Notes: generated from the sequence alone by a model not told the origin. DNA of 64,000 nucleotides from Mizuhopecten yessoensis (GCF_002113885.1 NW_018480065.1:570961-634960), one strand, 5' to 3'. Positions 2,450-52,842 are shown, counted from the first letter of the stretch. Program-made: numbers and translations.

Positions 2450-3616
2450 TACTGTATACGTGTGTCGACAACAGTGTAAAATATTTCCTCCCGAGGTAAA
2501 TGTTATTGAACCGGTCAAAAATAATAAATGGATTTTATTCGGAGCCGGAGGAAGTGTTGACTTTCTCAGCGAAGCAGGTATGTCTAAGAGTGAAATATCT
2601 GGTGGTCTAAACGACAAAACTTCAGACAACTCGAACTATGTTCAGTGTAAGACAATAGAGTTGTAACTGTTTTATTATTATTTATTTTTGTGATTATACG
2701 AATTTGTGCTTTAATCATTCTCAGCTGTTTAGCTAAAGTAACATGTTTATTGCATGCACAGAGCTAAATAAACGGGTTTTTGTTTTAGTCAAGTGATTGT
2801 TCTATTTGCTGTGCGTCTTAAAGAGAATGAATCTACCATATTGCTTTTAGAATTCGACTTACAATACAGACGGGTAATGTCTTACTATGATTTATATTAC
2901 GTTTGTTCTGTGAGAATATAGAATAGACAGTCTGGATTAGACAATCTATTATTATGATTCCGACAAGGCTATCACTTCTTTTATTTCATTTTTATGTCGA
3001 CCACAAAGTAAGTTTCCTTACTTTATGGACACTTCGCTGAGCCATTTGGGGGTTCTGATACCGGCTCTGTAACAAGCAAATGAATAATATAAATTCTTGT
3101 ATGAAATGATAAAATAACCACATGTATCATATATTTGTCCGTGATATAGATTTTTTGCGTTTGCGATATTGTTAGCTTTGCAGTAGCAATATTCCAGTCC
3201 GACCCATATCCGCTCAGTATTCTCCATATCTGCCAAGTATTCCCCATATCCGCTCAGTATTCTCCATATCTGCCAAGTATTCCCCATATCCGCTCAGTAT
3301 TCTCCATATCTGTCCAGTATTCCCCATATCCGCCAAGCACGCGCTCTACCTTTTTCATATTCGACTAAACACCTTGGGTAGTAACACATACATTGCATCC
3401 ACTCGATTTGTTTTATTGTTAAATTTATTTTGTGTGCTAAAAGATTTACGATGTGTCTAATATCAAAAAAAGGTCATGCTATGATCATATGCATATCCTA
3501 CAAAATATGTACCTTGTATCAGCCCTCTGTCTATACAGGCCCTCGGGTATCCGGCCCCTCAGGCTAATATAGAGGTCTTGGGTTAGGGGTAGGATATGGA
3601 AATCGCTATATTATAA
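2450..3616 (+). mobile_element. Decayed hairpin-ended tyrosine-recombinase element (left end not located)
   Basis: 2450-2666 reads TVYVCRQQCK...ILFGAGGSVDFLSEAGMSKSEISGGLNDKTSDNSNYVQ, resembling a YR box II region (HSLRAGG...AG...I...Y). There are internal CCCATATCC repeats and a degenerate terminal hairpin at 3492-3598 (CATATCCTA...TAGGATATG). Confidence 0.45.
3203..3337 (+). repeat. Minisatellite, 40-bp dimer of 20-bp units (CCCATATCCGCTCAGTATTC/TCCATATCTGCCAAGTATTC), about 3.3 dimers
   Basis: Directly visible tandem copies. Confidence 0.95.
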
Positions 3617-4750
3617 ATTTTAAATACTTACATTGAATAGTATATGTATTTTTAAGTTGGATGGATTATTATGGTACATGTACACTCTGTATATACACTA
3701 ACGCGTCGTAGAGTATCTTCATTTATTGAATAGAGAGATCTATATATGCTGCACAATGTGTAATGATGTTGTATCTTTCTCGGAAGAAAGTCATGTGCAT
3801 TCATAGTTGAAAACAGTTTACAAGTGAGATAAATCACATTGTATTTCATAATTCGAGATGATAAGAACTGCTGATTCTATACCACTGGGAGACCTATATC
3901 ACTTAACTCATTTTAATTGTAGTCGAAAGGTGCAAGTCCATAGTCTCTGAGTTTTGAACGAGTGTAATATTGTTGAAAAATGACGTTTCGTCCTACAAGG
4001 TTTAATAATAAAAAAAAATGGTCACTGTACATGTACTACGGATTCATTTTGGTTTCGTGCTTTCCTAATATGTAATCAGTACATGTATACATCGATTTAA
4101 CAAAGTTCAAGTTTAAATTCTTAAAACATCTAACCCTACTCTTTCGACTCATTGGTTTCAAAATGCATTTTACATCGAAAGCAAATCACATCATAAATTA
4201 TACACATAACATATGATTAATATGATACCGGATACCGTAGCTAATACAGTTAATTAGTTTTTCTGGTGTCATCCAAGGAAATTGAAAAGCAGACTTACAG
4301 GCGGAGGAAATGAGAAATGGGGATTTCTGCGGGTAATATAATGTATTATGGTCAGCTTTCTACTAACACTGTATAAATTAGCAATGGTGATTGTACAATA
4401 CTATATATGGAAACTATGACGTCAAACAAATATTGATGGATGCTTCCCTTGTGATTGTATACTTAAAGTGATTATACAAATACAAATGAAATATCTAATT
4501 ATCGTCCTTAATAGCTTGCAAAAATTAACCGGAAGTCCTTTACCGTATGCTAATCTTTCTTGAGCTACATTACCATATCTAAATATATAAGGTACATACA
4601 ATTCATATGCACACCGACCAAAGCAAGAACACTAGAAGGACCGCTTGATAAAAATGGTAAAATAAGTTATACACCTTTGCCATCTTTCTTTTTATTTATA
4701 TCAAGCACTTTTCCTATGAAACAAATAATTGTTGGTCCAGAGATAATTTA

Positions 4751-7700
4751 CTATTCAGGCACATTCCGAACCAACGTCTACTGTGTACAGGTACATTCTG
4801 ACCCAAAGTCTACTATATACAGTTACATTCAGGCCTAAATTCTACTGTATACATGTACATTCCGACCCAAAGTCTACTGTATACAGTTACATTCCGACCC
4901 AAAGTCTACTGTATACATGTACATTCCGACCCAAAGTCTAGTGTATACAGTTACATTCCGACCCAAAGTCTACTGTATACATTTACATTCAGACCCAAAT
5001 TCTACTTTATACAGTTCCATTCCGACCCAAAGTCTACTGTATACAAAGACATTCCTACCCAAAGTCTACTGTATACATATACAGTTACATTCAGGCCTAA
5101 ATTCTACTGTATACATGTACATTCCGACCCAAAGTCTAGTGTATACAGTTATATTCCGACCCAAAGTCTACTGTATACAGTTACATTCCTACCCAAAGTC
5201 TACTGTATACAGATACATTCCGACCCAAAGTCTACTGTATACGGTTAGATTCCGACCCAAAGTCTCCTGTATACAGGGACCTCCCGACGCAAAGTCTACT
5301 GTATACAGGTACATTCCTACCCAAAGTCTACTGTATACGGTTAGATTCCGACCCAAAGTCTACTGTATACAGGGACCTTCCGACACACAGTCTACTGTAT
5401 ACATTTAGATTCCGATCCAAAGTCCACTGTATACAGTTACATTCCTACCCAAAGTCTACTGTATCCAGGGACATTCGGACCCAAAGTCTACTGTATACAT
5501 AGACATTCCTACCCAAAGTCTACTGTATACAGATACATTCCGACCCAAAGTCTACTGTATACATTTACATTCTGATCCAAATTCTACTATATACAGGTAC
5601 ATTCCGACCCAAAGTCAATTGTATACATTTAGATTCCGATCCAAAGTCTACTGTATACAGGGACATTCGGACCCAAAGTCTACTGTATACATAGACATTC
5701 CTACCCAAAGTCTACTGTATACAGCTACATTCCGACCCAAAGTCTACTGTATACCGGTACATTCCGACACAAAGTCTACTGTATACCGGTACATTCCGAC
5801 ACAAAGTCTACTGAATACAGGTACATTCCGACACAAAGTCTACTGTATACCGGTACATTCCGACCCAAAGTCTACTGTATACATTTAGATTCCGATCCAA
5901 AGTCTACTGTATACAGGGACATTCCGATCCAAAGTCTACTGTATACAGGTACATTCTGACCCAAAGTCTACTGTATACAAAGACATTCCTACCCAAAGTC
6001 TACTGTATACATTTAGATTCCGATCCAAAGTCCACTGTATACAGTTACATTCCTACCCAAAGTCTACTGTATACAGGTACATTCTGACCCAAAGTCTACT
6101 GTATACCGGCACTTTCCTACCCAAAGTCTACTGTATACAGATACATTCTGACCCAAAGTCTACTGTATACCGGCACTTTCCTACCAAAAGTCTACTGTAT
6201 ACAGGTACATTCCGCTCCAGAGTCTACTTTATACAGGTACATTCCGACCCAAAGTCAATTGTATACAGGTACATTCCGACCCAAAGTCAATTGTATACAG
6301 GTACATTCCAACTCAAAGTCTACTGTATACAGGTACATTCAGATCCAAAGTCCACTGTATACAGTTACATTCCGACCCAACGTCTACTGTATACAGTTAC
6401 ATTCCCTACCCAAAGTCTACTGTATACAGGTACATTCAGATCCAAAGTCCACTGTATACAGTTACATTCCGACCCAAAGTCTACTGTATACATTTACATT
6501 CTGACCCAAAGTCTACTGTATACCGGCACTTTCCTACCAAAAGTCTACTGTATACAGGTACATTCCTACCCAAAGACTACTGTATACAGATACATTCCGA
6601 CCCAAAGTCTACTGTATACAGTTACATTTCCTACCCAAAGTCTACTGTATACAGATACATTCTGACCCAAAGTCTACTGTATACAAAGACATTACGACCC
6701 AAAGTCTAATGTATACATGTACATTCCTACCCAAAGTCTACTGTATACAGATACATTCTGACCCAAAGTCTACTGTATACAGTTACATTCCCTACCCAAA
6801 GTCTACTGTATACAGGTACGTTCTGACCCAAAGTCTACTGTATACAGGTACGTTCTGACCCAAAGTCTACTGTATACAGTTACATTTCCTACCCAAAGTC
6901 TACTGTATACAGATACATTCTGACCCAAAGTCTACTGTATACCGGCACTTTCCTACCCAAAGTCTACTGTATACAGATACATTCCGACCCAAAGTCTACT
7001 GTATACGGTTAGATTCCGACCCAAAGTCTACTGTATACAGGTACATTCCGACCCAAAGTCTACTGTATACAGGGACCTCCCGATGCACAGTCTACTGTAT
7101 ACAGATACATTCCGACCCAAAGTCTACTGTATACCGGCACTTTCCTACCCAAAGTCTACTGTATACAGGTACATTCCTACCCAAAGTCTACTGTATACAG
7201 GGACATTCCGACCCAAAGTCTACTGTATACAGGGACATTCCGATCCAAAGTCTACTCTATACAGTTACATTCCGATCCAAAGTCTACTGTATACAGGTAC
7301 ATTCCTACCCAAAGTCTACTGTATACAAAGACATTCCGACCCAAAGTCTAATGTATACATGTACATTCCTACCCAAAGTCTACTGTATACAGGTACATTC
7401 CGATCCAGAGTCTACTTTATACAGGTACATTCCGACCCAAAGTCTACTGTATACAGGTACGTTCTGACCCAAAGTCTACTGTATACAGGGACCTTCCGAC
7501 GCACCGTCTACTGTATACAGGGACATTCCGATCCAAAGTCTACTGTATACGGTTAGATTCCGACCCAAAGTCTACTGTATACATTTAGATTCCGATCCAA
7601 AGTCTACTGTATACAGATACATTCCGACCCAAAGTCTAATGTATACAGAGACATCCCGACCCAAAGTCTACTGTATACAGGCACTTTCCGATCCAAAGTC

Positions 7701-10678
7701 TACGGTATACAAAGACATTCCTACCCAAAGTCTACTGTATACGGTTAGATTCCGACCCAAAGTCTACTGTATACAGGGACCTCCCGACGCAAAGTCTACT
7801 GTATACAGGTACATTCCGACCCAAAGTCTACTCTATACAGTTACATTCCGATCCAAAGTCTACGGTATACAAAGACATTCCTACCCAAAGTCTACTGTAT
7901 ACGGTTAGCTTCCGACCCAAAGTCTACTGTATACAGGTACATTCCGATCCAAAGTCCACTGTATACAGTTACATTCCGATCCAAAGTCTACCGTATACAG
8001 TTACATTCCAACCAAAAGTCTACTGTATACAGTTACATTCCGACCAAAAGTCTACTCTATACAGTTACATTCCGACTAAAAGTCTACTGTATACAGTTAC
8101 ATTCCGACCCAAAGTCTACTGTATACAGGGACCTTCCGACGCACAGTCTACTGTATACAGGGACATTCCGACCCAAAGTCTACAGTATACAGGTACATTC
8201 CGACCAAAAGTCTACTTTATACAGTTACATTTCGACCAAAAGTCTACTCTATACAGGTACGTTCCGACACAAAGTCTACGGTATACAGGTACATTCCGAC
8301 CCAAAGTCTACTGTATACAGGTACATTCCGATCCAAAATCTACTGTATACAGGTACATTCCGACCCAAAGTCAATTGTATACAGGTACATTCCAACCCAA
8401 AGTCTACTGTATACAGGTACATTCCAACCCAAAGTCTACTGTATACAGGTACGTTCCGACACAATGTCTACTGTATACAGGTACATTCCAACCCAAAGTC
8501 TACTGTATACATGTACATTCCTACCCAAAGTCTACTGTATACAGGTACATTCCGACCCAAAGTCTAGTGTATACAGGTATGTTCCGACACAAAGTCAACT
8601 GTATACAGGTACATTCCGACCCAAAGTCAATTGTATACAGGTAACTTCCAACCCAAAGTCTACTGTATACAGGTACATTCCGACCCAAAGTCAATTGTAT
8701 ACAGGTACATTCCGACCCAAAGTCTACTTTATACAGGTACATTCCGACCCAAAGACTACTGTATACAGGTACGTTCCTACACAAAGTCTACTGTATACCG
8801 GTACATTCCAACCCAAAGTCTACTGTATGCAGGTACATTCCGACGCAAAGTCTACTGTATACAGGCACATTCCAACCCAAAGTCTACTGTATGCAGGTAC
8901 ATTCCGACGCACAGTCTACTGTATACAGGTATGTTCCGACACAAAGTCTACTGTATACTGGGACATTCCGACCCAAAGTCACTTGTATACAGGTAACTTC
9001 CAACCCAAAGTCTACTGTATGCAGGTACATTCCGACGCAAAGCCAATTGTATACAGGTACATTCGGACCCAAACTCCACTGTCTAGGGGTACATTCCGAT
9101 CCAAAGTCTACTGTATACAGGTACATTCCGACCCAAAGTCTACTATATACAGGTACATTCCGACGCAAAGTCTACTGTATACAGGTACGTTCGGACACAA
9201 AGTCTACTGTATACAGGTACATTCCGACCCAAAGTCTACTGTATACAGTTACATTCCGACGCAAAGTCAATTGTATACAGGTACATTCCGACCCAAAGTC
9301 TACTGTATACAGTTACATTCCGACCCAACGTCTACTGTATACAGTTACATTCCCTACCCAAAGTCTACTGTATACATGTACATTCCTACCCAAAGTCTAC
9401 TGTATACAGGTACATTCCGACCCAAAGTCAATTGTATACATTTAGATTCCGATCTAAAGTCTACTATATACAGGTACATTCTGACCCAATGTCTACTGTA
9501 TACAGTTACATTTCGACCCAAAGTCTACTGTATACATGTACATTCCTACCCAAAGTCTACTGTATACATTTAGATTCCGACCCAAAGTCTACTATATACA
9601 GGTACATTCCGACCCAAAGTCTACTGTATACAGGTACGTTCCGACACAATGTCTACTGTATACAGGTACATTCCGACCCAAAGTCTACGGTATACAGGTA
9701 CATTCCGATTCAAAGTCTACTGTATACAGGTACATTCCGACCCAAAGTCAATTGTATACAGGTACATTCCAACCCAAAGTCTACTGTATACAGGTACATT
9801 ACAACCCAAAGTCTACTGTATACAGGTACGTTCCGACTCAATGTCTACTGTATACAGGTACATTCCGACCCAAAGTCAATTGTATACAGGTACATTCCGA
9901 CCCAAAGTCTACTGTATACAGGTACATTCCGACCCAAAGTCTAATGTATACATGTACATTCCTACCCAAAGTCTACTGTATACATGTACATTCCAACCCA
10001 AAGTCTACTATATACAGTTATATTCAGGCCTAAATTCTACTGTATACAAATACATTCCAACCCAAAGTCTACTGTATACATTTACATTCCCTACCCAAAG
10101 TCTACTGTATACATGTACGTTCCGAGCCAAAGTCTACTGTATACAGGTACATTCCGACCCAAAGTCTACTGTATACAGGTATGTTCCGACACAAAGTCTA
10201 CTGTATACAGTTACATTCCCTACCCAAAGTCTACTGTATACATGTACGTTCCGAGCCAAAGTCTACTGTATACAGGTACATTACGACCCAAAGTCTACTG
10301 TATACAGGTATGTTCCGACATATACAGGTACATTCCGACCCAAAGTCAATTGTATACAGGTACATTCCAACCCAAAGTCTAATGTATACATGTACATTCC
10401 TACCCAAAGTCTACTGTATACAGGGACATTCCGACCCAAAGTCTACTATATACAGTTACATTCCCTACCCAAAGTCTCCTGTATACAGTTACATTCCGAC
10501 CCAACGTCTACTGAATACAGTTACATTCCCTACCCAAAGTCTACAGTATACAGTTACATTCCGACCCAACGTCTACTGTATACAGTTACATTCCCTACCC
10601 AAAGTGTACTGTATACAGTTACATTCTGACCCAAAGTCTAGTGTATACAGTTACATTCCCTACCCAAAGTCTACTGTA
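4751..10678 (+). repeat. Satellite array, 32-bp unit ACATTCCGACCCAAAGTCTACTGTATACAGGT, about 185 copies
   Basis: Directly visible. Each unit contains the palindrome CTGTATACAG; 33-bp variants occur near the end. Confidence 0.99.
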
Positions 10679-10725
10679 GAAATCATTTTTGAGTTACTTT
10701 TTTTCATCCATGGTGTCTTGTGTAG

Positions 10726-11704
10726 CAGTATACAATTGTTTCATTGGTACTGGGGGGACAGTCAAATCATTGATCCGAGGTAGCAGGGAAGACCTAGGGA
10801 ACTGTTGCCCAAGGCCGAAGGCCGAGGACAACATTTCCCTAGGTCTTCCCTGCTAACGAGGGTCAAGGATTTGACTGTTCCCCCAGTATCAATGAAACAA
10901 ACGATTTATTACCTGACTCTCTATTTAAGAAACTTGATGAATTCTGCGAGTTAGGATAACTGACTGTATGAAAGGATAGAAGATTTAATTCTACGTAATA
11001 TCTACTCAAAAACTCGTTCAGTTCTTCATTACTGCAGGTTTCGTCGATCATAACACCTTTCTCTGCACAATATTTATCCAAAATATTCACAGCTCCCTTA
11101 ATGACGTTTTTGTACTAAGAGAGTCACTATTATCCATAAGCAATTCCAAATCTTGCTGAGAAACATCCTCAAATCTGACAACAAACAAATCTGTATCCAA
11201 AAGACGCTTGAGTGGGACCGCCGACGGGGAAATTGTCTGCGCACGATTGTCGTGCATGCAACAGTTAGTATTATTACCCAATAGTCTATATAAATTATAA
11301 TTAGACATTTTTGACTGTTTCTGGCTTTTTGTCCAATTTCGGCTTTAGGGGTGAAACAGTCAAAACTGCTTTCCCGGTCAGAGTGAACTGTTACCCGGCG
11401 CGAATTCGATGCGCAGAAATCTCCCCTCGAGAGCCCCTTCAAGCGTTTCGGTGACCGCGACTCAGTGCTGAAGCAATGGCAACATTGCATGCAGCATTGA
11501 TCTAATATTTATTTGGTAATAAAACAATTGTTTCATGGTTATTTGGGGAACAGTCAAAACTATCATCCCTCGGTAGGGGGAGCCCTGTGGAACTGTTTGC
11601 ACTTGGCCTAGCGGTCTCGGGCAAGCAGTTCCCCAGGGCTTCCCCCTACCTCGGGATGATAGTTTTGACTGTTCCCCAAATAGCCATGAAACAGTTGTAT
11701 ACTG
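10726..11704 (-). mobile_element. Non-autonomous Crypton-like (DUF3504 tyrosine recombinase) element with two terminal hairpins
   Basis: Hairpins at 10736-10900 (loop GCC-GAA-GGC) and 11524-11698. Outer ends CAGTATACAATTGTTTCAT / ATGAAACAGTTGTATACTG are inverted, as are the inner edges TTTATTACC / GGTAATAAA. Encloses an ORF remnant. Confidence 0.8.
10985..11176 (-). pseudogene. N-terminal fragment of Crypton/DUF3504 (KCTD1/ZMYM-like) tyrosine recombinase, frameshifted and truncated
   Basis: Restoring one A in the A-run near 11107 gives RFEDVSQQDLELLMDNSDSLSTKNVIKGAVNILDKYCAEKGVMIDETCSNEELNEFLSRYYVEL. This matches the recalled RF..vs.ed.......s.nT......v.....y......eeLn..L..fy.e N-terminus of this family. 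Confidence 0.75.
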
Positions 11705-13667
11705 TCTACGTACAAGTTTTTTTCATCGATGGAATAAAAACTGGGTGAAGTACAGGACAAAAGCCTGTGCGGGAAACTATGTGATTTACCACTACATATG
11801 TATTGAAAATAGTTCCCAACTGATTTTATCAACTTATTACTATGTGTTTGTTTTCCAAAGCTAAAAATGATATCCCATAGATGGAAACCAACATGTGCTT
11901 AAACAATTGTAAGAGTGAACAGAAAGGCTGATTTAACAACCAGAACCTAAGTCAGCATCACTGTTTCACTGTATACAGCTCTAGATCTATGTATTAAGAG
12001 TTATGGCGACTTCTCAGAGGTGTATCATCAATATAAGTTTAAACATTTCAGAACAACAAATAAAAATTAGGTTAACCAGCAGTGTGCTTCATGTGGTATA
12101 TCAACGATGTTTTGTCTTGACAACGACAACTTATTTAATCCTTTCGTCATCTCTGAACGACGTCATTATGGGGCCAGTTCTTGTGCCCGCTTATTTATAG
12201 CTGGTATGGCATATACTTCGATACTAGTACGGTCCAAAAAAGATGGAAATGTGACCCCCTCCCTTTTGTTTTAAATTGCAACAAAATATTTTCCATCGGA
12301 TATAGTTTTATTTACTAAGAATAGAGAAGGAAAATCACAGAAAAAAAGCCACAAATACGTCATGCTTTTTATCGTTGCCTGTAGAATAGCCGGACGAACC
12401 AGACCACATCAAAGTTATAAAATGTTGTTAAATGTCAGTTTTCACAGCTACTGTAAATTGTAGCCTGCTTGAAATGTGTTCCGTTGTGTTTTGATTTACA
12501 CATTTTTAAACATTGAACAAGAAATGTTATTATCATTGGGCCTTAACTAATACCCCGTATTCACCATCTTATAACTAAAGAAAAATGAAAACAAAGGTTT
12601 ACATTTCAATTAAGAAATAACACCTGAATAAAACAGCCATAATTGTTCCTTTTAAAACTGTAGCTATGTAGTCATTGTAGTATTGCCCGTGCTAAAACTT
12701 AGGTTTTCTCTGTTAAGAAATGAAAAACCATTCGGAAATAAGGTGGTTTGATTAGTGGCAATCGTCATTGTTAATTTGTCATTTAAAAACATTTCCTCGA
12801 GGTCGGTTTTTGTTTAAACAACACTTAAGTTCACACGATAGCTTAAGGAGCCATGCACTGTAAAGGGGCCCTTGACTGTAAACTGGCATTGCTGAACGTC
12901 ACTCTTACATGTAACATCCATTCGTGGTCGTAGTATAAATACATACATTTTTTTTCTAACTATGGTAGTTTGTAAATTTTCTTAAAAGAACACGTCTACA
13001 TTTTACGTAATCGGAACGTTAATTTCCGCTCCCTTCATTTGCCATTGTGTATTGTATACAAGATACATAGAACGGCTTGATAAAAAACCTAAACTATAAC
13101 TGAAACCATGTAATAGAACTTTTACTTTGTCGATTTTAACGTAGATTCTAGTATCTATAGAATCTCGAGTTACACCGCCTCACTGCGTGTTTTCCTTACT
13201 CGTTATTTAAATCTAAAGACTAGCAATTAGTTTGCTGATAAAAATAAATTATCGGAACAAAAAACAAAATGTTTCACGAAACTTCTCTGAAACCATAGTA
13301 CATGAGAACTTATCTGCTTACATCAAGAAATGCAACGTTCGTGCGCACGGAAATAAGTCATGCGTTTTTTTACATTGCTCCAGAGTGTATAGATTAGGGA
13401 TTTCCGTCAATAAATTAAACCATTCCAATCGAGAATATTTCGCCTCCGGTGACGCAGTAGAGCATTTATGGAAAAGTTCATTGACGCAAGTACAGTATAA
13501 TGTTATTAGAAATCTCTCATTTTAAACATTATGTTTATATACAGTTTTCTCATCATTAAAGAACCATTACGGTTTTGTTGAGTTAAAGTACAAACGTTTC
13601 CGAGCAATGTTTGAAGTTCATTTCTCTTCAATGTAGACATGAAAGACACATCTTGGTATATTGACAG

Positions 13668-20770: not shown

Positions 20771-22444
20771 TTTCCTTTTATTTATATTATTTTCAATATT
20801 GATGTCCAAACAGAAAGGTAAATAAATAAAAATAGATAGAAAAGGAAATAAGATAAAACACAAATATACATGAGTATACACATGTAGAAACATTCGTTCT
20901 GTCAGAATAGACGAAAGAGGTAAAAGGCCTTATATGAATAATAGAAAAAAATCAATATAGAATGCTTTGTATTTGTATGTACGTTGTAAGAGGATGCATG
21001 CATCAGGTCAATGATTGCGGCTTCGATTTTCTGTGAGTGGACACATACAAGAAATCCACGTCGTCTGCAGCAAAACCCACATAAGTCATATCTTACGATA
21101 AGTCAATGAGAAATAGCAAGCTATTTTTCTTAACAGTACATGTCCGCCGAAAATGTGTTGTAAGATAGTATCACCCTCATTTTCATCATGACTGTACGTG
21201 GCCAAGCTTTATTGGATTGACGAAATGCATTACTTTGAAATAATGAATATAACAATAATAAACCTAAGCTAAAAAAATAAATATAAAATATAATTAACTT
21301 TTTTGTTTATTCAAATGTAATTTATTTTAGGCAGAAAGTGTCCATGAAAGCTAATGGTTTTTCACTTCATTTAGCGAAATGGCTGACATGTTCTTTAACA
21401 GGTCGCTTAAGCCAATCTGCTTGCACACGATTGTCATTTTAAACGGGAATGCCAGACACGCAGAAAGGTGTTATTAGTAAAACGGTAAACATGATGAGAG
21501 TCAGTATAGCGGATAATAGGGTTTGATTGGGAAACAGATGAGCTACTTTGTTGTAAAGTAATTAATAATCAGCAACCCGGGGTGTAAGTTCACACCCCAC
21601 CAGATATAAGTACGCCAGTCCACAAAAACATAAAACGTGCGTTTGAATCTCTGCGGGGAAACTTATTACAGTAGCTGTTCCTCCTGATCACCATCCTTTA
21701 TAACCAGGGTGTGTATACGCGTAGCCCTTGGAGGGCTGTGGAGTGCAAAGTAAATCCAATGCTAAACACGAATACCGCGATGTATTGGTAAAGGTGTGTA
21801 GACAGTACCACGCTGTGCAAGTTTATTATAAGTTGAAATTAATAGATTCTCAATCCATACAAAAACATCATGTGTAAACTACGGCAACACATTGCGAAAG
21901 CCAACACAAACAATGCAAAGTATGCGGCACCACTTTACATCTGAAACACATTGGGTAGGGTCCTTCAACAGACTGAAGTACGCTAGCTGCAAAATTGGCG
22001 TGTTACATTCGAAGAGCGAAGATGCGTACATGAAAATTAACCAAAGAATATTTATTTATTTTAAATTGATATCGAATTTCACATTTATCATTTTCGAATT
22101 TTCCATGGTATTATTTTTTTTCAAAATAAGAGTCTATTTGTGTTTGAAATCATGTTTGATGAAACATAAGTATGAACCTTGGGTTGACAATTCCNAACGT
22201 TGGCACGATAGAATTGTTAACTGAGTCACCGCTATTTAATCAGCGAGTTGACCTTTCAATAATACGTCATTCCAGTTATTGTTCCAGGGTATGTTACACA
22301 TGTGATACAATGTAGTAAACAACTTATACCGGCGGATAGAACAGGAAGGGAATATCTCAAACAAAGACTGCAATTAATGATATACAGGTGTATGACGCAA
22401 AACCTCTCCTAATATTATTTGTATAAAGTTTAAAAAGAGAATGT

Positions 22445-22995
22445 CTAATTATTTCCGGTTGAATTTTATTAATATAATACTAGTGTGCAAAATACTTTAA
22501 TATTTTACAAGTGAGCCAGCACGTGTGAAAATATTGATGCATTCTGCCAAACGATTGAATTTTAAATGACATTCAAAGGGAAATCATAATTTAGCACGCT
22601 AGAATGAAGAAACTGTTACTATAACAAACAGTGGGAGCAAATCAATCATCTTAATCCCTTCAATTGTGTGATGGGTTTTTAATTGATGACGTTTGACTTT
22701 TAAAACGTCACATTCTAGAACACAGCCAAAACGCACTTTTTAAACTTTATACATATAGTTGTTTATGTTATATATTTTTTGTATATTCATTAGTTGAATG
22801 TCAGAACATGTTATTTTTGACCGGTAACAATACATTGCAATATATTATTTTCTTCGTGACATATAACATATAAAAGCAACATTTTCGAACCATTTTCATC
22901 ATTGACAATGGTGTGATTACAAAATGTACTATCGTTAAGGACGTACGAGCTATTATATATTTCATCAATGTGGGTCCATACTGTAAAAAACACAA
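22445..22995. mobile_element. Old hairpin-ended element remnant
   Basis: Degenerate fold-back at about 22480-22560 (GCAAAATACTTTAATATTTTACAAGTGA-GCCA-GCACGTGTGAAAATATTGATGCATTCTGC) with a GNNA-type loop. Right boundary is approximate. Confidence 0.4.
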
Positions 22996-31881: not shown

Positions 31882-32246
31882 TTGCTCCGCTGCCTCGCAC
31901 TGTAGGAGAAGTAATTAATTTAAAGGACTAAGGTTTCAGCATCACATTCATTGTAACAACATAACATTTATTTCGTTAAGTAATGTGTTGTAAAACACTT
32001 CAAAGAGATTTACTTGATCAAGTTGCAATCAATCCGTGCGCGTTTGAAGCAAACTTGTTATTTTGTACATGAAAGTAAAAATGGTGGCAACTATGAATTT
32101 GAATTTCAATGCCAGCAATTTGGTGATGTCAACAAAGAGAGAAGTACATAAGGAGTTGAAAAAAAAAAATGTAAAGCAAACATTATGGCTACCCCAGGCA
32201 ACCTAGGTACAATGTAGGTGCTCTGTTTAACGTTACAAGCCCTACA

Positions 32247-32364
32247 GGGCCCACTTGTATAAAACATCTCAAAGTTAAGGAAATTCTCAAGCAATGTATT
32301 GTCTATGGGAAATCTTAGACTTGAGGAAATCTCAAGAGTTGAGATGTTTTATACAAGTGGGCCC
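32247..32364. mobile_element. 118-bp fold-back MITE (PIF/Harbinger-like)
   Basis: Perfect 26-bp TIR GGGCCCACTTGTATAAAACATCTCAA / TTGAGATGTTTTATACAAGTGGGCCC. The superfamily assignment is inference. Confidence 0.85.
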
Positions 32365-33622
32365 GGTACGCGATACACAGAGCAGCTGATTACTACAGAC
32401 AAAGTGATTCCTTTTTATCATTTCGACACACACTAATCAGTTAAGAACTCAACTTAATGAAAAACAGTTGATCACTGATCAGAGTTGTATACGACAAGCA
32501 ATTGTTGTAAATACCTACAAAATGAAAAGAAAAGAAATAAAACCATGCAAACCAGATTGTGTATATCACAGGAAACTAAATAACCGACTACAATCACTGA
32601 GGAAGTTAGAAATATAGCAGCATTTCTAAACTCAATTCAGCTCCTTTAGCATTGTCTAAGAATAACTATGCGACACAATATTCGGTAATATGGACAAAAC
32701 AATCACCTCCGATACCAATTCTGTCATTTCAAGCCAGTTTGAACACTTTGATTGATCTTTGGTTTATTTCTCATCACAATGAAATTAAGCCAGCGCCTGT
32801 CAAGGAACCTGTCACCAGACACGACATACGGCGTCTGGTATCCTGAAGTATTTGTGTGACGTCAGCATTGTGTTACGTGCAATATATACTCAATATAGCA
32901 GCATGATCCAAAACACATATTCGTGTGTTTTTAGTAATTCAGCCTTACTTTTTTATCTATCAAAACTGTTCTTAGTAATAATTGTTTAGTTATTTATTTA
33001 TTATTTTTCGGACTATTATTGATTCGATGTATTAATACATGTAACATGCTATGTGATTTGTTTGTTTATTTGGTATCTTGAGTATAGTTGCATTGCCTTT
33101 TTGTAGCTTTCCAAACGTTCCAAAAATGATTTTTGAGGTTCAAATGACAAAACGAATCTCACATTCGTTGCCATATCAGGAGATAATTATGAAATTTGTT
33201 TGGAATATTTCAATTTCGCACCGTACAGCCTCAATTTCATAACTAGTTTTATAGAAAGAAAACAAAAATTAAGCGGAAGCTAAAATAAGATCATCTGTTA
33301 TTACATAATATTCGATGTCTTACTCTCAAAATTGTCTAGCCAAATTAGATAACTCTGTCGGTTGCACTACATTTTCTTAGACCACGGCATATCAATTGAA
33401 ATTATGTTCTGTAAGCCAACATGTTTTGTCTAGGCCTGAAAACGTCAAACTATGCCTGTAATGTTACACTCACTTTGCCGCCATTATATATTGTGGCACC
33501 CTGACAATTTGGTGCCTGCATAAAAAGGATGGAAAACAGGTATCACTGTCTTTTTCTAAAGAAATACACACATGATAAATAAGTGATATTTTTTGCAGCA
33601 GAGATAGAAAAAAATAACCGAA

Positions 33623-33996: not shown

Positions 33997-34019
33997 GAGG
34001 TTGAAGCTTGCTATCGATT

Positions 34020-37336: not shown

Positions 37337-37782
37337 TGATATGTTAGGAACGCGTGCACCTCAGAGGTGTGGATGACGGGTACTGCCAAGTGGACGGAAG
37401 ATGATTGAATGCGGAACGGACGGAATGCGAATGGTATGGCACCATACGGATACGTAATGCACTTAATAAGTACACCAGCACTATAAACAAGTTTACAGTT
37501 TTCTATTCCAAATTACATTTTTTTTTAATTTATTTTTTGTAAAATACATATTGTATGTTAAAATTGTGTGATCTTGAAGAAGTACATAAGTTGTAAGATT
37601 AAACTACTTCAATATGTTTGTTATGAATTAAAGAATGCAAAAATAGTCTGCAATCTACAAAATAAAAAAACAAAACAAAAAACAAAAAAATATACCGCCA
37701 CTCTAGATAAGATTACTAATTCAGATTGATGTATATGTCTGTGGTTTTATTTAAATATAGTGTTGTTGTCATTTGATAGCGA
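37337..37782 (+). repeat. Direct duplication, copy 1 (copy 2 at 39342-39759)
   Basis: TGATATGTTAGGAACGCGTGCACCTCAGAGG...TTGTTGTCATTT.ATAGCGA present at both sites. Confidence 0.95.
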
Positions 37783-38625: not shown

Positions 38626-38860
38626 GCAAGCAAACTTCATAGATAAGATATAAACTTTATTAATTTTGCCACAATTGTGAAACAAGGCTTTTCAACTTGT
38701 ATCAATCACTCTTGTTCCCTAGCAGGGCAGTATGCAGGGAGAAAAACTAGAGTACTCCTAGAGAGAAAACGTTGCCGACCAGGTTAACTAACTACGTCCG
38801 ATTGAGGAATCCAACACTGACCGTCTTTGTGAAAGACGAGTGCACTATCCACTGCGCCAC
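38626..38860 (-). mobile_element. Near-complete tRNA-derived V-domain SINE
   Basis: Minus-strand head GTGGCGCAGTGGATAGTGCACTCGTCTTTCAC (A box), GTTGGATTCC (B-box-like), decayed V-domain and family tail. Confidence 0.75.
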
Positions 38861-39341: not shown

Positions 39342-39759
39342 TGATATGTTAGGAACGCGTGCACCTCAGAGGTGATGATAACGGATACTGCCAAGTGGAC
39401 GGAAGATGATTGAATGCGGAACGGACGGAATGGGAATGGTATAGCACCATACGGATACGTAATGCACTTAATAAGTACACCAGCACTATAAACATGTTTA
39501 CAGTTTTCTTTTCCAAATTACATAAAATGTTCTTCATTTTAGAATATATGTTAAAATTGTGTGATCTTTAAGGAGTATATTAATTGTAACATTAAAATAT
39601 TAAAATATGTGTGAATTAAATAACGCAAAAATAGTCGCAATATACAAAACAAAAACAAAACAAAAAAAGAACAAGGCCACTTTAGATAAGAATACTAATT
39701 CAGATTGATGTATATGTCTGTGGTTTATGAGATATAGGGTTGTTGTCATTTAATAGCGA
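39342..39759 (+). repeat. Direct duplication, copy 2 of 37337-37782
   Basis: Direct alignment by eye, with scattered substitutions and small indels. Confidence 0.95.
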
Positions 39760-39760
39760 C

Positions 39761-39954
39761 CAGTGTTGGATTCCTCAATCGGACGTAGTTAGTTTACCTG
39801 GTCGGCAACGTTTTCTCTCTAGGAGTACTCTAGTTTTTCCTCCCTGCATACTGCCCTCCTAGGGAACAAGAGTGATTGATAAAAGTTGAAAAGCCTTGTT
39901 TCACAATTGTGGCAAAATTAGTAAAGTTTATATCGTATCTATGAAGTTGGTTGC
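39761..39954 (+). mobile_element. Headless inverted copy of the 38626 SINE
   Basis: Reverse complement of 38626-38819, including flanking tail sequence. Confidence 0.85.
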
Positions 39955-41746: not shown

Positions 41747-41821
41747 GTACCCAACTGAGAGACATTGTAGTACCCAAAACGAGACAGTACCCAAAACGAG
41801 ACATCACCCAAAAGGGGACAC
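41747..41821 (+). repeat. Short tandem GTACCCAAAACGAGACA repeats (possibly transposon subterminal motifs)
   Basis: Two exact and two degenerate copies. Confidence 0.6.
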
Positions 41822-44225: not shown

Positions 44226-47200
44226 TGAAACCTCTTTTAATAGCCTCGTGAAACCTCTTTTTATAGTCTCCCGAAACCTCTTTTTATAGTCTCATGAAAC
44301 CTCTTTTTATAGTCTCCTGAAACCTCTTTTTATAGTCTCCTGAAACCTCTTTTTATAGTCTCATGAAACCTCTTTTTATAGCCTCGTGAAACCTCTTTCT
44401 TAAGCCTCGTTAACCCTCTATCTAAAGCCTCGTGAAACCTCATTGTATAGCCTCGTTAACCCTTTATTTATCGCCTCATGAAACCTCTTTCTATAACCCT
44501 TGAAACCTCTTTCTATAGCCCTTTGAAACTCTGTCTATAACTTCGTGAAACCGATTTCCTCAGCCCTTGAAACCTCTTTCTATAGCCCTTGGAAACTCTT
44601 TCTATAGCATTTTAACACCTCTTTCTAAAGCCTCGTGAATCTCTTTTATAGCCTCGTGAACCTTCTATCTATAGCCTCATAAAACCTCTTTTTATAGCCT
44701 CGTGAACCTTCTATCTATAGCCTCGTGACACCTCTTTCTATAGCCTCGTGACACCTCTTTCTATAGCCGTTGGAAACTCTTCCTATAGCCTCGTGAAACC
44801 TATTTCCTTAGCCCTTGAAATCTATTTCCTTAACCCGTGAAAACTCTTTCTATAGACTCTTGAAACCTTTTTCTATCGTCTTTTTCTGTGGCCTCGTGAC
44901 AACTCTTTTTATAGCTTCGTGAAACTTCTTTTTATAGCCTCGTTAACCCTCTATCTATAGCCTCATAAAACCTCTTTCTATTGCCTCGTGAAACCTCTTT
45001 CTATAGCCCTTGACACCTCTTTCTATAGCCCTTGGAAACTCTGTCTATAGCTTCGTGAAACCGATTTCCTTAGCCCTTGAAACCTCTTTCTATAGCCCTT
45101 GACACCTCTTTCTATAGCCCTTGGAAACTCTTTCTATAGACTCTTGAAACCTCTTTCTATAGCCTTTCTTCGAAACTTCTTTCTATGACCTCGTGAAACC
45201 TCTTTCTTTGGCCTCATGAAACCTTTTTCTATGGCCTCAAGACACCTCTTTCTATAGCCGCGTTAACCCTCTATCTATAGCCTCATGCAACCTCTTTTTA
45301 TAGCCTCGTCGTGAAAACTCGTTCTATAGCCTTGTGAAACCTCTTTCTATAGCCTCATGAAACCTCTTTTTATAGCCTCGTGAAACCTCTATATATAGCC
45401 TCGTGAAATATCATTTTATAACCTCGTTAACCGTCTATCTATAGCCTCATAATACCTCTTTCGATCGCCTCGTGAAACCTCTTTCTATAGCCCTTGAAAC
45501 CTCTTTCTATAGCCCTTGGACACGCTTTCTACAGCTTCGTGAAACCGATTTCCTTAGCCCTTGAAACCTCTTTCTATAGCCCTGGGAAACTCTTTCTATA
45601 GCATTTTAACATCTCTTTCTGAAGCATTTTGAAACCTCTTTCTATAGCCCATGGAAACTCTTTCTATGGACTCTTGAAAACTCTTTCTATCGTCTTGTGA
45701 ATATTCTTTCTATGACCACGTGAAACCTCTTTCTATGGCCTCATGAATCCTGTTCCTATAGACTCGGGAAACCTCTTTGTATAGCCTCGTGAAACCTCTT
45801 TCTATAGAATTTGACACCTTTTTCTATAGCCCTTGAACCTCTTTCTTTAGCCTCATGATACCTCTTTCTATAGCATATTGATACCTTTTTCTATAGCCCT
45901 TGAAAACTCTTTCTTTAGCATTTGACACCTCTTTCTTTAGCCCTTGAACCTTTTTCTATAGCCTTGTGAAACCTCTTTCTATAGCAATTTGACACCTCTT
46001 TCTAAAGCCCTTGGAAACTCTTTCTATAGCCTCGTGAAACTTCTTTTTATAGCCTCATAAAACCTATTTCCTTAGCACTTGAAACCTCTTTCTATAGTCT
46101 TGTGAAACTTATTTTTATGACCTCGTGAAACCTCTTTCTATGGCCTCATGAAACCTGTTTCTATAGCATTTGACCCCTCTTACTATAGCCCTTGGAAACT
46201 CTTTCTACAGCATTTTAACACCTCTTTCTAAAGGATTTCTAAACCTCTTTCTATAGACTCTTGAACCCCCTTTCTTTAGCCTTGTGAAACCTCTTCCAAT
46301 GACCTCATGAGACCTCTTTCTGTGGCCTCATGAAACCTGTTTCTCTAGCCTCGTTAAACCTCTTGGTATAATCGTGAAACCTCTTTCTATAGCATTTGAT
46401 ACCTCTTTCTTTAGCCGTTGAACCTCTTTTTATAGCCTTTTCAACCTCTTTCTATAGCATCTTGACACCTTTGCTATGGCTATGTGAAACTTCTTTCTAT
46501 ACCCGCGTGAAAACTCTTTTTATACTTTCTTGAAACCTTATTCTATAGCCTCGTTAACCCTCTATCTATAGCCTCATGAAGCATTTGACACCTCTTTCTT
46601 TAGCTCTTGAACATTTTTCTGTAGCCTTGTGAAACCTCTTTCTATAGCAATTTGACACTTTTTCTAAAGCCCTTCGAAACTCTTTCTAAAGCTTCGTGAA
46701 ACCTCTTTTTATAGCCTCGTAAAACCTATTTCCTTAGCACTTGAAACCTCTTTCTATAGTCTTGTGAAACTTCTTTCTATGATCTCATGAAACCTCTTTC
46801 TATGGCCTCATGAAACCTGTTTCTATAGCATCGTGAAACCTCTTTGTATAGCCTCGTTAACCCTCTATCTATAGCTTCATGAAACATCTTTCTATAGCCT
46901 CGTGAAACCTCTTTTTATAGCCTCATGAAACCTCTTTCTAAAGCCTCGTTAACCCTCTATCTATAGCCTGGTAAAACCTCTTTTTATAGCCTCGTTAACC
47001 CTCTATCTATAGCCTCATGAAACCTCTTTCTATCGTCTCGTGAAAAATCTTTATATAGCCCTTGGAAAGTCTGTCTATCGCCTCGTGAAACCTTTTTCCT
47101 TAGCCCTTGAAATCTCTTTCTATAGCCCTTGGAAACTCTTTCCATAGCATTTTAACACCTCTTTCTAAAGCATTTTGAAACCTCTTTCTATAGCCCTTGG

Positions 47201-47501
47201 AAACTCTTTATATAGACTCTTGAAACCTGTTTCTATCGTCTTGTGAAAATTCGTTCTATGACCACGTGAAACCTCTTTCTATGGCCTCCTCATGAAACCT
47301 GTTTCTATAGCCTCGTGACACCTCTTTTTATAGCAATTGACACCTCTTTCTTTAGCCCTTGAACCTTTTTCTATAGCCTTGTAAAACCTCTTTGTATAGC
47401 CTCGTGATACCTCTTCCTATAGCATATTGATACCTTTTTCTATAGCCTCGTGATACCTCTTTCTATAGCATCTTGAAATCTCATTCCATAGCCTCGTGAA
47501 A
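44226..47501 (+). repeat. Satellite array, 21-23-bp unit GAAACCTCTTTCTATAGCCTCGT, about 145 copies
   Basis: Directly visible; strongly pyrimidine-biased + strand. Confidence 0.99.
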
Positions 47502-49472: not shown

Positions 49473-49518
49473 ATGTATGTATGTATGTATGTATGTATGT
49501 ATGTATATATGTATGTAT
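49473..49518 (+). repeat. (ATGT)n microsatellite
   Basis: Directly visible. Confidence 0.95.
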
Positions 49519-49967
49519 CAGTCTTTGCGTTGTAAAAAGTGTTTTTGTTACATGTATCATTCGCCTTGTAGTTTCCGTCTTTCGTATTGCAACTATGTTC
49601 ACGTTTTTTATGGTAATAAGGTCCTACATGTAGTTATTTGTTTGCATTGTGATAGAATTATTGATTTCGTAATGTATGCATAATGGTTAAGCTTTTAAGC
49701 AAAAAGGGCTGCATCGTAGACTATACGTAACGAATAAATCACCTTTTCCTCCTTTTAAGTATTTATTTTATATTCCAGCTAAGACAGAGTGTGGATTTCA
49801 ATTAATTATTTTGGATGATACATCATTTATCTCGACATGATAACCCAATTTACTGTAGCGACCATGAAACTTCAAACAAAGTTTTCGCCAAAGTTCAGCA
49901 GTAAGAACCTATCGCACTCCGCTTAACAAATCTTGTTTGTTTTGTTAGGGATTTGTCTCCTTGAATA

Positions 49968-50452
49968 GGCCAAAGAGTTGCAATATTAGTAGACTTCCGC
50001 GCTCGACAGCCAAAAGAGTTGCAATATTAGTGGACTTCCGCGCTCGACAGTTCAAAGAGTTGCAATATTAGTGGACTTCCGCGCTTGATAGGCCAAAGAG
50101 TTGCAATATTAGTGGACTTCCACGCTCGACGGCGCCAAGAATTGCAATATTAGTAGATTTTCATGCTCGAAGGCCCCCAATAGTTACAATATTAGAGGAC
50201 TTTTATGCTCGAAGGCCCCCAATAGTTGCAATATTAGTGGACTTCCGCGCTCGACAGCCCAAAGAGTTGCAATATGAGTGGACTTCCGCGCTCGACAGCC
50301 CAAAGAGTTGCAATATTAGTAGACTTCTACGCTGGACGGCACCAAGAATTGCAATATTAGTTGATTTTCATGCTCGAAGGCCCCAATAGTTACAATATTA
50401 GAGGACTTTTATGCTCGAATGCCCATAGAGTGGCAATATTAGTGGTCTTCGT
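49968..50452 (+). repeat. 41-bp minisatellite, 12 units (CCAAAGAGTTGCAATATTAGTGGACTTCCGCGCTCGACAGC)
   Basis: CAATATTAG-type core recurs at 49981, 50022, 50063, 50104, 50145, 50187, 50229, 50270, 50311, 50352, 50393 and 50434. Confidence 0.97.
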
Positions 50453-50865
50453 CATATCTATTTTACAGAACAAATTATTCTACACAACATACCTACCATG
50501 TAATAAAACTCACAAATTACTTTATCGGGAAATATCCTTACTTTTTCAACACAATGGAATGATGTATTACAGAGAAAAAAATATATTTTAAAAGAATTAT
50601 TCACCCCCTTGTAGGTAAGACAGGGGAATCTCAACACTCGTGTTTGGCAACATAAGAATCTTCCCCCTAGGGTTGAGATTCCCCTATCTCACCCCCAAGG
50701 GGATAATAGATTATATTAATCATTCCCGGCTGAAACGGGAGACACACTTGTGAAGGGTGGGAGAATACCGTGTGTTAAGACAATTGATACACTAACATAT
50801 ATTTTAATTATAGATAACGTGTACTTCAGCCATGATTCTTTTTCACCTACACTGGTCCCCCATTG

Positions 50866-51980
50866 TGTATGGGGATTGAATGGATTTTTGTTCATGTACA
50901 TTGCGGCAATGAGTAGCAGTAGCTGTATGATCTACATATCATATGGACAGCGTTAGCGCTCTTCAGAAGATATGTAGATCAGCTACTGCTATTCATTGCC
51001 GCAATGTACATGAACAAAAATCCATTCAATTCATATATTTACGTAACGGTGAACGGTGAACTACAATAAAAAAAAGTTACATTTTTTTTGTAAATATATT
51101 ATTTTTGATATTAGTATCGGACAGAAAACCATAAAAATGGAACAGCCAGAACTCCAGCCTACACAGAAACTTCATATATTCCTTTCATTTTTAAAAGTTG
51201 ATCTGGTTATTTTTGCATTAAACACCGCATATTATATATTTCACAAAGTTTACCGCACTATTTCAACTCATCGGTCACCATAGTAATCGTCCAGGACACC
51301 CGTCGGCATTAGGCATAGAGCTCAGTTGAATGTAAATGCACAGCCGTTGAATACGCTGTTTGTCAAACAAACTGCAGATGTAAATGATGATAAATTAATG
51401 GATGAAGTGCCCTGTGTGTGCAAGTTGATGTCACAGGGATTACCCAGCCGGACGTGTGGTGTTAGAAAGTTCGTGACCACGAGGAACCGATTGCGAGTCG
51501 GAAGTCAGGATTTAATATGAGAATGTTATAAATAAAAAAAATAAAAATTCAAATAACAAAAATAAAAATAATAGTACAATGGTACGCCATTCATGATTTT
51601 CCAATGTTTTCTATTATTTCTCGAAACTACGTTATCACGGAGAAGGGGATATAAGTCTTCTCAGAAACGGTACTATACGTAATTTGATTTGTCATTGTGT
51701 GTGAAATCAGCTGACCGGTTGTATTCATAGTGTATTCATAGTCTAATGGCAGTTGTTTTCAATTGGTAGATTCATGTACAGAACAAACATCAAGAATGTA
51801 CATATAACTTATTTAAGGAATGATTTTTATTTTTTCAACATTTATGAGGTCATAACAACAATGGGTTTATGGACATATTGAATGAATCGCGTTAGCGATT
51901 CATGTAAAATATGTCCAAAAACCCATTGTTGTTATGACCTCATAAATGTTGAAAAAATAAATATCATTCCTTATATTTAC
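50866..51980 (-). mobile_element. Younger Crypton-like hairpin-ended element nested in the 50596 element
   Basis: Near-perfect hairpins at 50875-51030 and 51814-51973, both with a C-GTTA-G loop and both followed by TATATTTAC. Encloses a YR C-terminal remnant. Confidence 0.8.
51322..51510 (-). pseudogene. C-terminal tail of Crypton/DUF3504-type recombinase
   Basis: ...NPCDINLHTQGTSSINLSSFTSAVCLTNSVFNGCAFTFN* (stop 51322-51324). An S/T/N-rich tail ending FNxCxFxFN is the recalled C-terminal signature of this family. Confidence 0.65.
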
Positions 51981-52842
51981 ATTGACGAATCCTTTCAGTG
52001 GATCGATATAACAACGAATAAAACAAATAAACAGGGTTTGTTCCTGCTTATACACGGGTGCAACGCAGTGGCGAGAACAGTGTTTTTTCGCGGGGAAATG
52101 TGACACTATCGTGAGAGATCTTAGCAACCGTCAACAACAATAACACAACAAAATGTAGTTCCATATTCAATGTTTATTTGTAGCACAGGACACGTGAATA
52201 CGTGGATATTTCACCAAGCAGAGTTCAATAATATTTTAAGATGTAAGAATTAAGCATCTAGGTCGGTCGTTCCGAGTGAGTTGTTTTTGTAGTGTATTAT
52301 TACGCAGTGTGATCAGGTTACTATCAGTACCCACGTGCTGAGATTCTATGAACACCTGTGTTATGCATTTATGAATGTAATTTTTGTCAATGGGTCTAAG
52401 CATACAGAATGTAAATATAAGGCAATGATAACGTCACATGCTAAATTCTGGGTTGACGTGACGTTGATGGTTGCTGACGTGACGTCATTGTATTGTTGTA
52501 GTGACGTCATACCATTGACATGAATAGAGGAATCCCCCGTCTCAACTCTAGGGTTACAGTAGACGACAAAGAAATCTCACACTGATAAAAGTGCGGATGC
52601 ACCTGTCCAGGGTAAGAGAAAACTTTGTCATTACGCGGATTAATTAACATCATTTCTAGTCAATAATATATATATATATATATATAATGTAACGCCTTTC
52701 ATCCTCCGTGCATTGATATGTCGGGGTTGGTCTCATGCTCTGGTCGGTCGAGGATTGTAGTCTATTTCTTTCTAATTCTACCATAGGTTTTTTTCATATC
52801 CAATGATTCAATAATCACCATATTTTGAACAAAACAAAACCC

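Follow-up and report, generated by a model that had tools for sequence, protein, structure and literature searches.

The transposons closest to the elements described here are Cryptons of the CryptonA/DUF3504 type, whose termini have been reported to carry short (4-6 bp) direct repeats only and whose boundaries have been called hard to define (PMC3212892). In a 2026 paper on DUF3504 CryptonA elements, some families are presented without a repeat description (PMC13465315). Word searches of both papers returned no mention of a hairpin, palindrome, or stem, and nothing relevant was found in the literature linking a Crypton to a hairpin, a palindrome, attC, or a bivalve, with Repbase and Dfam entries outside this comparison. 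End recognition by Cryptons has been unclear so far, and a conserved structured end site offers a testable mechanism. Here, we analyze a 64,000-nucleotide stretch of the genome of the scallop Mizuhopecten yessoensis (GCF_002113885.1 NW_018480065.1:570961-634960; hereafter the window). The original prediction for this stretch described five loci (2450-3616, 10726-11704, 22445-22995, 50596-52687, and 50866-51980) with long fold-back ends and suggested that these ends belong to tyrosine recombinase elements and may be recombined as folded strands, similar to integron attC sites.

We favor, with a probability of roughly 0.55, the reading that the fold-backs are cis-acting recombination sites of DUF3504 (CryptonA-like) Crypton DNA transposons and that recombination takes place at the foot of the hairpin. 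A complete element is ~2.1-2.4 kb long and contains one tyrosine recombinase gene, and one of its termini is formed by a lone imperfect palindrome of 110-190 nt. This one terminal hairpin-forming site is the most conserved noncoding part of these Cryptons. The window holds defective relatives only, namely a truncated and internally deleted copy (unit A), gene-less units with the same class of hairpin (units B and E), and gene-less units with another class (units C and D). Gene-less units retaining the hairpin have reached high copy number, and some of them are stacked head-to-tail.

Results

Recombinase-coding elements end in a single hairpin

Genome searches were run over the 988-Mb assembly, and a six-frame search with DUF3504 returned at least 150 matches. 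One family, termed Fam1, is present in at least 10 copies with 99-99.9% identity over ~2155 bp (L046:~712-2864) and unrelated flanks. The single 502-aa open reading frame (ORF) of Fam1, the only one of at least 150 aa in the 2.15-kb unit, matched DUF3504 (E 1.5e-33) and Phage_integrase (E 3.7e-10) and is 100% identical to an NCBI Mizuhopecten yessoensis protein. On its 3′ side, the unit ends precisely with a palindrome that measures 136 or 171 nt (L046:2729-2864). A second family of 2.4 kb with a 415-aa ORF (Fam2) also has its palindrome exactly at one boundary, with the gene on the other strand. Judged by its sequence, Fam1 encodes the recombinase as its likely transposition enzyme; the window has only the N-terminal remnant found in unit A. 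The only solved-structure match of the recombinase was QRICH1 (E 1.6e-11), which is uninformative on the substrate. No terminal inverted repeats (TIRs) or long terminal repeats (LTRs) were found in Fam1, Fam2, B, or C. The coding units of 2.15-2.4 kb have a single recombinase ORF and contain no reverse transcriptase or inverted terminal repeats, which places them outside the definition of DIRS-like elements.

Proteins homologous to that of Fam1 (40-57% identity) are frequent among molluscs and cnidarians. We examined the DNA of eight homologous gene families, which come from five molluscs (Mercenaria mercenaria, Pinctada imbricata, Mytilus edulis, Dreissena polymorpha, and Octopus sinensis), one coral (Porites lutea), a Tara metagenome contig, and the assembly ERZ25071447. 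A palindrome of 100-190 nt was located 180-400 bp past the stop codon in all eight, and in each it has internal loops of the TC·TC kind and reads CTCG on the sense strand. An AT-rich CTAT-type 3′ foot was present in seven of the eight, all except Porites; the foot sequence is CCTCTAT in Fam1 as well as in the Tara contig, Mercenaria, and Dreissena. For ERZ25071447, four copies define a unit of ~2.14 kb that obeys the rule of complementary ends described below. The A/B/E-type hairpin-forming site of Cryptons is conserved from corals to molluscs.

The association of recombinase and hairpin rests on seven scallop families together with the eight gene families from other sources. The predicted membership of the hairpins in recombinase elements is borne out by Fam1 and Fam2, which end exactly in a palindrome, and by their mollusc and coral homologs; for units C and D, no link to a recombinase was found. 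This missing link, along with the frequency of background palindromes (about one per 5-10 kb of the fetched flanks), would suit hairpins that are unrelated fold-back, miniature inverted-repeat transposable element (MITE), or Helitron-type repeats merely lying near Crypton genes. We consider such a coincidence very unlikely, as multi-copy coding elements stop precisely at the palindrome in two scallop families and in ERZ25071447 and it lies in the same place in eight of eight other gene families; for the CTCG class of hairpins described below, it is already largely refuted. No Rep/helicase or DDE ORF was found in the coding units. Genome copies also showed that each hairpin belongs to its own repeat unit, which has a non-palindromic body and just this one palindrome at its end; the units are therefore not fold-back elements. 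The hairpins had been paired into two-ended elements in the original prediction, and this pairing has to be abandoned, since each one lies at the end of its own unit. A first reading of the repeats as Helitron/Helentron or MITE composites was dropped because the coding families end in the hairpin.

In 12 of the 13 coding families, the hairpin lies on the sense strand, 180-400 bp beyond the stop codon, as would be expected if it served the gene or an intermediate, either as an RNA 3′ end or terminator or for second-strand priming on a single-stranded circle. Such a role is quite improbable, given that gene-less units keep the hairpin as their only shared feature, that the Fam2 gene is on the other strand, and that element boundaries and head-to-tail joints fall at the hairpin foot.

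Conserved architecture and strand polarity of the hairpin

The hairpins were folded as single-stranded DNA. Nine scallop families form a class, termed the CTCG class, that comprises units A and B, Fam1, Fam2, hairpins next to two further recombinase genes (L045 and L061), and three hairpins encountered by chance in flanks, two of which are good copies of family E. The common plan consists of an outer stem, a 2 × 2 internal loop, a middle stem, a second 2 × 2 loop, a G+C-rich apical stem of 3-6 bp, and an apical loop of 3-4 nt. The two or three 2 × 2 internal loops of each hairpin are formed by TC opposite TC inside C-TC-G, and CTCG is therefore found in direct orientation on both arms, with counts of three to five CTCG and zero or one CGAG per hairpin. 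The polarity is fixed, as the CTCG-reading strand always carries the hairpin at its 3′ end and is, for 12 of the 13 coding families, the gene's sense strand. On the opposite strand, the mismatches read C-GA-G. In one Fam1 copy (L054:2726-2894), the outer right CTCG reads CGAG and the loop is then fully paired, reflecting either a flipped dinucleotide or repair.

The apical loops quoted in the original prediction are present, with GAA at ~10818, GTTA at ~50952 and ~51892, and TAGC on the plus strand (GCTA on the minus strand) at ~11611. However, the conserved GNA/GNNA loop proposed from them was rejected, since apical loops vary (TTC, TAGC, AAA, AAG, TGA, AGA, TAC, and others were seen) and no such rule is general. 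Conservation is instead seen in the foot and in the TC·TC internal loops. Fam1 variants with and without 35 apical nt both occur as near-identical multi-copy sets, indicating that the apex is dispensable. A protelomerase-like cut at the center of the palindrome was also rejected, because an active Fam1 variant lacks the apex and the foot is conserved.

Covariation of the hairpin arms

The hairpins of units A and B are ~75% identical, and 15 of their 69 pairs are changed on both sides and still paired, with 97% of cells paired. Changes private to single A or B copies break pairs. A wider set of eight families was composed of three scallop families and those of Mercenaria, Pinctada, Dreissena, the Tara metagenome contig, and ERZ25071447. 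Double changes occurred in 44 of 60 pairs compared to 19.5 ± 2.7 in shuffles, where 0 of 500 reached 44, and to at most 17 pairs when partners were slid; 94% of cells are paired in the true alignment, and the inner right motif ACTC is invariant across all eight families. The expectation that structure rather than sequence is conserved in these ends was thus supported by compensated changes at both levels of comparison.

Paired changes would also arise if one arm were copied from the other, and the number of copies is very large for an enzyme of the cut-and-paste type. The symmetry might accordingly be a by-product of copying, by fold-back or hairpin-primed synthesis at each transposition, and not a selected recognition structure. 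This is improbable, because copying would erase the mismatches, yet the TC·TC loops occupy the same places from coral to scallop, and because the private mutations of single dead copies that break pairs have stayed unrepaired.

Complementary ends and junctions at the hairpin foot

When an element is oriented with its hairpin 3′, its opening 10-13 nt (X′) are reverse-complementary to the bases that directly precede the left hairpin arm (X). The complementary runs were 12/12 for Fam1, 10/10 for Fam2, 12/13 for B, 11/11 for C, and 12/12 for the ERZ25071447 family, with 0-5 of 2000 shuffles reaching each observed score, and a weaker run of 8/9 was found for unit D. The far end of unit C, ATATTTACATT, complements the bases beside its hairpin, and in full-length unit A, TTATTACC faces GGTAATAA. 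As the far end complements bases inside the hairpin foot, the crossover is placed at the foot, as in attC.

The complementarity of X and X′ also means that the palindrome continues across head-to-tail joints. Such joints were found in L055 (Fam1), L010 (B-B), C76555 (D-D), the window (between C and D, 51807/51809), and a Dreissena tandem, whose internal hairpin exceeds the terminal one by 16 nt. The L055 joint reads CCTCTAT followed by TTATTATATAAT, and the 3′ joints of Fam1 read CCTCTAT followed by ATAT. The break point is the foot of the right arm. Insertion targets look AT-rich. All four ERZ25071447 copies (L074-L077) sit between (TA)n microsatellite runs on both sides, and these runs are either the target or generated at insertion.

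The sequence TTGTAT is found at both ends of unit B and only once at the B-B tandem junction, and TAT in Fam1 plays the role that TTGTAT has in unit B. Units A and B share TTGTAT at both ends, and their flanks contain the dyad AACAG..CTGTT. Target-site duplications are absent in most copies. The exceptions are one Fam1 copy (L046, contig C143), with a perfect 48-bp direct duplication of host DNA (661-708 / 2862-2909), and one unit C copy (L020), with an imperfect 33-bp flanking duplication.

Proposed recombination mechanism

According to the reading that we favor, the element would be excised as a circle, in which the palindrome would be lengthened by pairing of the far end X′ (10-13 nt) with X just inside the foot. 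Cutting and rejoining by the recombinase would then occur where the right arm meets X′, at the hairpin foot. The partner would be either a short target, AT-rich or dyad in character, or the corresponding site of a resident relative, and recombination of the latter kind would give rise to arrays. The site may be used in folded form, as an extruded cruciform or a folded single strand as in integron attC, and the CGAG-reading strand, whose mismatches would form tandem G·A pairs, is the candidate active strand. In a pyrimidine-GA-purine context, such tandem pairs are stable.

Folding at some step is favored because complementarity is kept along the whole arms and the mismatches are kept unpaired across phyla. 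Neither feature is needed for duplex sites, and arm copying would lose the mismatches. We tentatively suggest, as a proposal somewhat short of even odds, that animal CryptonA-type transposons recombine via a folded hairpin (cruciform or single strand), with the TC·TC/G·A mismatches marking the active strand and replication resolving the one-strand exchange.

The same element and recombinase could instead use the palindrome as a duplex array of binding sites for the recombinase or accessory proteins, comparable to attP-like arms, that never folds. Tyrosine recombinases normally use duplex cores, the B and A junctions have 6-7 bp of shared TTGTAT and dyad-flanked targets, and CTCG lies within short local dyads (CAC-TC-GTG, GCC-TC-GGC) that are repeated four times in the manner of binding sites. 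Nevertheless, a duplex array has no need for 60-80 nt of arm complementarity, yet 44 of 60 stem positions covary. The asymmetric TC is moreover kept non-complementary in every family and species, which has a structural meaning only if the arms pair. A purely duplex site is thus rather unlikely, although it stays a serious explanation because the A/B junctions resemble a classical core.

Several further observations weigh against foot recombination of a folded Crypton site. Known tyrosine recombinases mostly work on duplex sites, and the A/B junctions, with their shared TTGTAT and the target dyad AACAG..CTGTT, look like a classical duplex core. Covariation alone is no proof of selection for folding, since palindrome symmetry can come from arm-to-arm copying. 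An energy model predicted the CGAG-strand hairpin to be the more stable one in 14 of 15 cases, by a mean of 2.1 kcal/mol, but this gap follows from the TC/GA composition and is not independent evidence. The flank duplications of 48 and 33 bp are unexpected from simple site-specific integration. Units C and D have a different apex type and no TC·TC loops, and no recombinase gene or remnant was found in the ~60 kb around 20 of their copies. In most of the other species, element boundaries were taken from single copies. Finally, no circle, empty site, or strand-specific intermediate was seen in 18 runs, which were read at contig level only, the stretch being too repetitive. One joint in the read contigs, from 50699 to 52601 with 20 nt on each side, was too weak for use.

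Hairpins and recombinase remnants of the window

Comparison of the window with its own opposite strand by self-BLAST and a repeat finder identified four strong palindromes. They are located at 10736-10900 (165 nt, 85% self-complementarity), 11524-11698 (176 nt, 85%), 50875-51030 (~160 nt, 87.5%; 50868-51037 with outer pairs), and 51811-51976 (168 nt, 89%). In a sliding 260-nt scan, their scores were 205-251, whereas the window as a whole had a median of 23 and reached 86 at the 99th percentile. Two weak or decayed palindromes were found at 50588-50719 (72%, score 74) and, in single-copy DNA, at 22448-22587 (140 nt, score 53, ~97th percentile). The palindrome scan of the window gave no second fold-back near 22995 or 52687. 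Of the five predicted loci, two, 2450-3616 and 22445-22995, found no support, as the first shows no fold-back (score 26, equal to background, with best stems of 17-20 nt) and the second has a lone decayed palindrome. Genome searches showed 2450-3616 and 22300-23100 to be single-copy. The only part of 2450-3616 with relatives in the genome is a 40-bp tandem repeat at 3203-3334 (3.3 copies, 97% identity). An extra imperfect palindrome of 126 nt, without a CTCG motif, was observed at 32243-32368 (73%, score 86) and had been unlisted in the prediction.

A Pfam scan of 10 long ORFs and 70 ORF pieces of the four loci gave no recombinase match. The tblastn search with genome-derived recombinases did detect a recombinase N-terminus in unit A, which the Pfam scan had not, on the minus strand at 10986-11176 (E values of 6e-7 to 2e-5 with the N-termini of DUF3504/Phage_integrase proteins). 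The stop-to-stop frame 10866-11114 (minus strand) of this unit belongs to a small family, the best copy of which is a 70-aa N-terminus that aligns to residues 1-70 of ~400-aa proteins with QRICH1, DUF3504, and Phage_integrase matches. As the recombinase homology ends where the hairpin begins, unit A is an internally deleted element. A marginal match was obtained at 3342-3467 (minus strand, E 0.077), and tblastn with the scallop recombinases found no further remnants in the window. Three loci had been thought to enclose pieces of recombinase-like ORFs; one solid piece and one marginal piece remain.

Repeat units of the window

Locus 10726-11704 splits into two repeats, units A and B. Unit A (10726-11269, minus strand) is a 5′-truncated and internally deleted Crypton consisting of a 5′ untranslated region, the recombinase N-terminus, and the terminal hairpin. 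Its genome copies show 83-94% identity, and full-length relatives reach ~125 bp further in the 5′ direction, starting with TTATTACC. The terminal palindrome (10736-10900, minus strand) is of the CTCG class, with TC·TC and TC·TT as its 2 × 2 loops and an apex that reads GGCC-TTC-GGCC on the minus strand, i.e., with GAA as the plus-strand loop. Unit B (11270-11705, plus strand) is a non-autonomous element of 435 bp composed of a body and a 3′ hairpin, and it adjoins unit A head-to-head at AACAGTTAGT, which is internal to A. More than 40 copies of unit B were scored, with 94-97% identity, among 429 candidates, and some of them are in tandem. Its terminal palindrome (11524-11698, plus strand) is also of the CTCG class, and it is this stem that carries the 15 compensated positions relative to A. 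Elsewhere in the genome, a 237-aa recombinase fragment (L065:5611-6321, contig C5161) with 61% identity to Fam1 lies head-to-head with a copy of unit B ~130 bp away, a layout that matches the A/B arrangement in the window.

The decayed palindrome at 50588-50719 is a family E hairpin, better copies of which (L012:2294-2455 and L012:1205-1400) are of the CTCG class. Locus 50866-51980 splits into units D and C, which are placed head-to-tail on the minus strand, 1 nt apart (51807/51809). Unit D (50868-51807, minus strand) is a non-autonomous element of ~940 bp with the hairpin 50868-51037 at its minus-strand 3′ end; its copies show 78-88% identity, with a tandem D-D on contig C76555. Unit C (51809-52419, minus strand) is non-autonomous, 611 bp long, and has the hairpin 51811-51976 at its minus-strand 3′ end. 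For unit C, 40 scored copies were 99-100% identical, and at least 704 candidates were found for the body alone. The apex of both units reads GC-GTTA-GC, and neither contains TC·TC loops. No autonomous partner of units C and D was found, the genome searches returning C copies only. The sequence upstream of unit C (52420-52553, minus strand) is common to two other C copies (L012 and L013) and is either part of a longer C variant or a repeated target.

Several tandem arrays lie close to these units. A satellite with a 32-bp period (4752-10678, ~185 copies, 85% identity) stops 48 bp short of the hairpin terminus of unit A, and several Fam1 and unit C copies elsewhere also lie inside tandem repeats. 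Further arrays are located at 44226-47501 (23-bp period, with multiples of 46/69) and at 49970-50450 (41 bp, with a higher order of 207/248), the latter just upstream of the E/D/C stack. Apart from the hairpin units, an inverted repeat pair (38633-38819 / 39761-39948; 188 bp, 97% identity, 942 bp apart), with direct repeats nearby at 37337-37782 and 39342-39759, is probably another kind of transposon with true TIRs. A second inverted repeat pair is found at 24852-24991 / 25152-25286 (140 bp, 75% identity, 161 bp apart). An ORF piece at 61033-61350 (minus strand) matched an SMP-30/gluconolactonase/LRE-like region (E 1.7e-11) and an NHL repeat and is probably an exon of a host gene.

Discussion

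The hairpin provides a handle for annotating Cryptons and their gene-less derivatives, among them scallop families that number hundreds to thousands of copies and that would be classed as unknown repeats without it. If folded-hairpin recombination is true, integron attC recombination would have its first counterpart in a eukaryote, and this would explain how a cut-and-rejoin enzyme yields hundreds to thousands of near-identical copies, from cnidarians to molluscs. The findings also bear on the ancestry of the domesticated ZMYM/QRICH1/KIAA1958 genes, and a small self-contained recombinase with a structured site may be of interest for genome-engineering tools.

Compared to CryptonA/DUF3504 elements (Kojima & Jurka 2011, PMC3212892; Glomhopper 2026, PMC13465315), the coding families share the single DUF3504 + Phage_integrase ORF, the lack of TIRs and LTRs, short direct repeats at the ends (here TTGTAT in unit B and TAT in Fam1), a presumed circular intermediate, and kinship to the domesticated ZMYM/QRICH1 genes. 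They differ in the long imperfect terminal palindrome with TC·TC loops, which also defines abundant gene-less derivatives.

Fold-back elements and palindromic MITEs resemble the scallop repeats in having long fold-back DNA at high copy number. However, they are palindromic throughout and have two equivalent ends, whereas the units described here are 435-2400 bp long with one hairpin, a unique body, and unlike ends. The IS200/IS605, IS91, and Helitron/Helentron elements have in common with them subterminal cis hairpins, no TIRs, the lack of target duplications seen in most scallop copies, and tandem read-through arrays. In contrast to the 110-190-nt palindromes found here, these elements have hairpins of ~10-20 bp and depend on HUH/Rep enzymes, and the scallop elements lack both Rep/helicase and 5′-TC..CTRR-3′ ends.

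With respect to sites recombined as folded strands, the CTXphi attP/XerCD system, as cited in PMC9345347 (Val et al. 2005), has a tyrosine recombinase acting on a site formed only by folding of a single strand, in which stem mismatches matter, and for the scallop elements this serves as an analogy only. It differs in being a phage genome that uses host recombinases and a fixed dif target. The attC-like layout put forward in the original prediction was recovered, in that one imperfect palindrome lies at one end of the unit, the crossover is at its foot, and head-to-tail arrays are formed. The X/X′ complementarity and the junctions support it in Fam1, Fam2, A, B, C, and ERZ25071447, as a likeness of layout and not of homology. 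Integron attC cassettes, in the account of Bouvier et al. 2005 cited in PMC9345347, likewise have a body and one imperfect 3′ palindrome per unit, first bases that form the outer part of the right arm (X′ corresponding to R′), a crossover at the foot, conserved unpaired positions, fixed polarity, and head-to-tail arrays of unlike units. Relative to attC as described in that source, the sites reported here are eukaryotic, are served by an element-borne recombinase of the DUF3504 type, have no attI platform or promoter, and show no sequence similarity. The attC palindromes given there are 57-141 nt long compared to 110-190 nt here, and their extrahelical bases contrast with the 2 × 2 TC·TC loops of the Crypton hairpins, for which use of a folded strand is a proposal.

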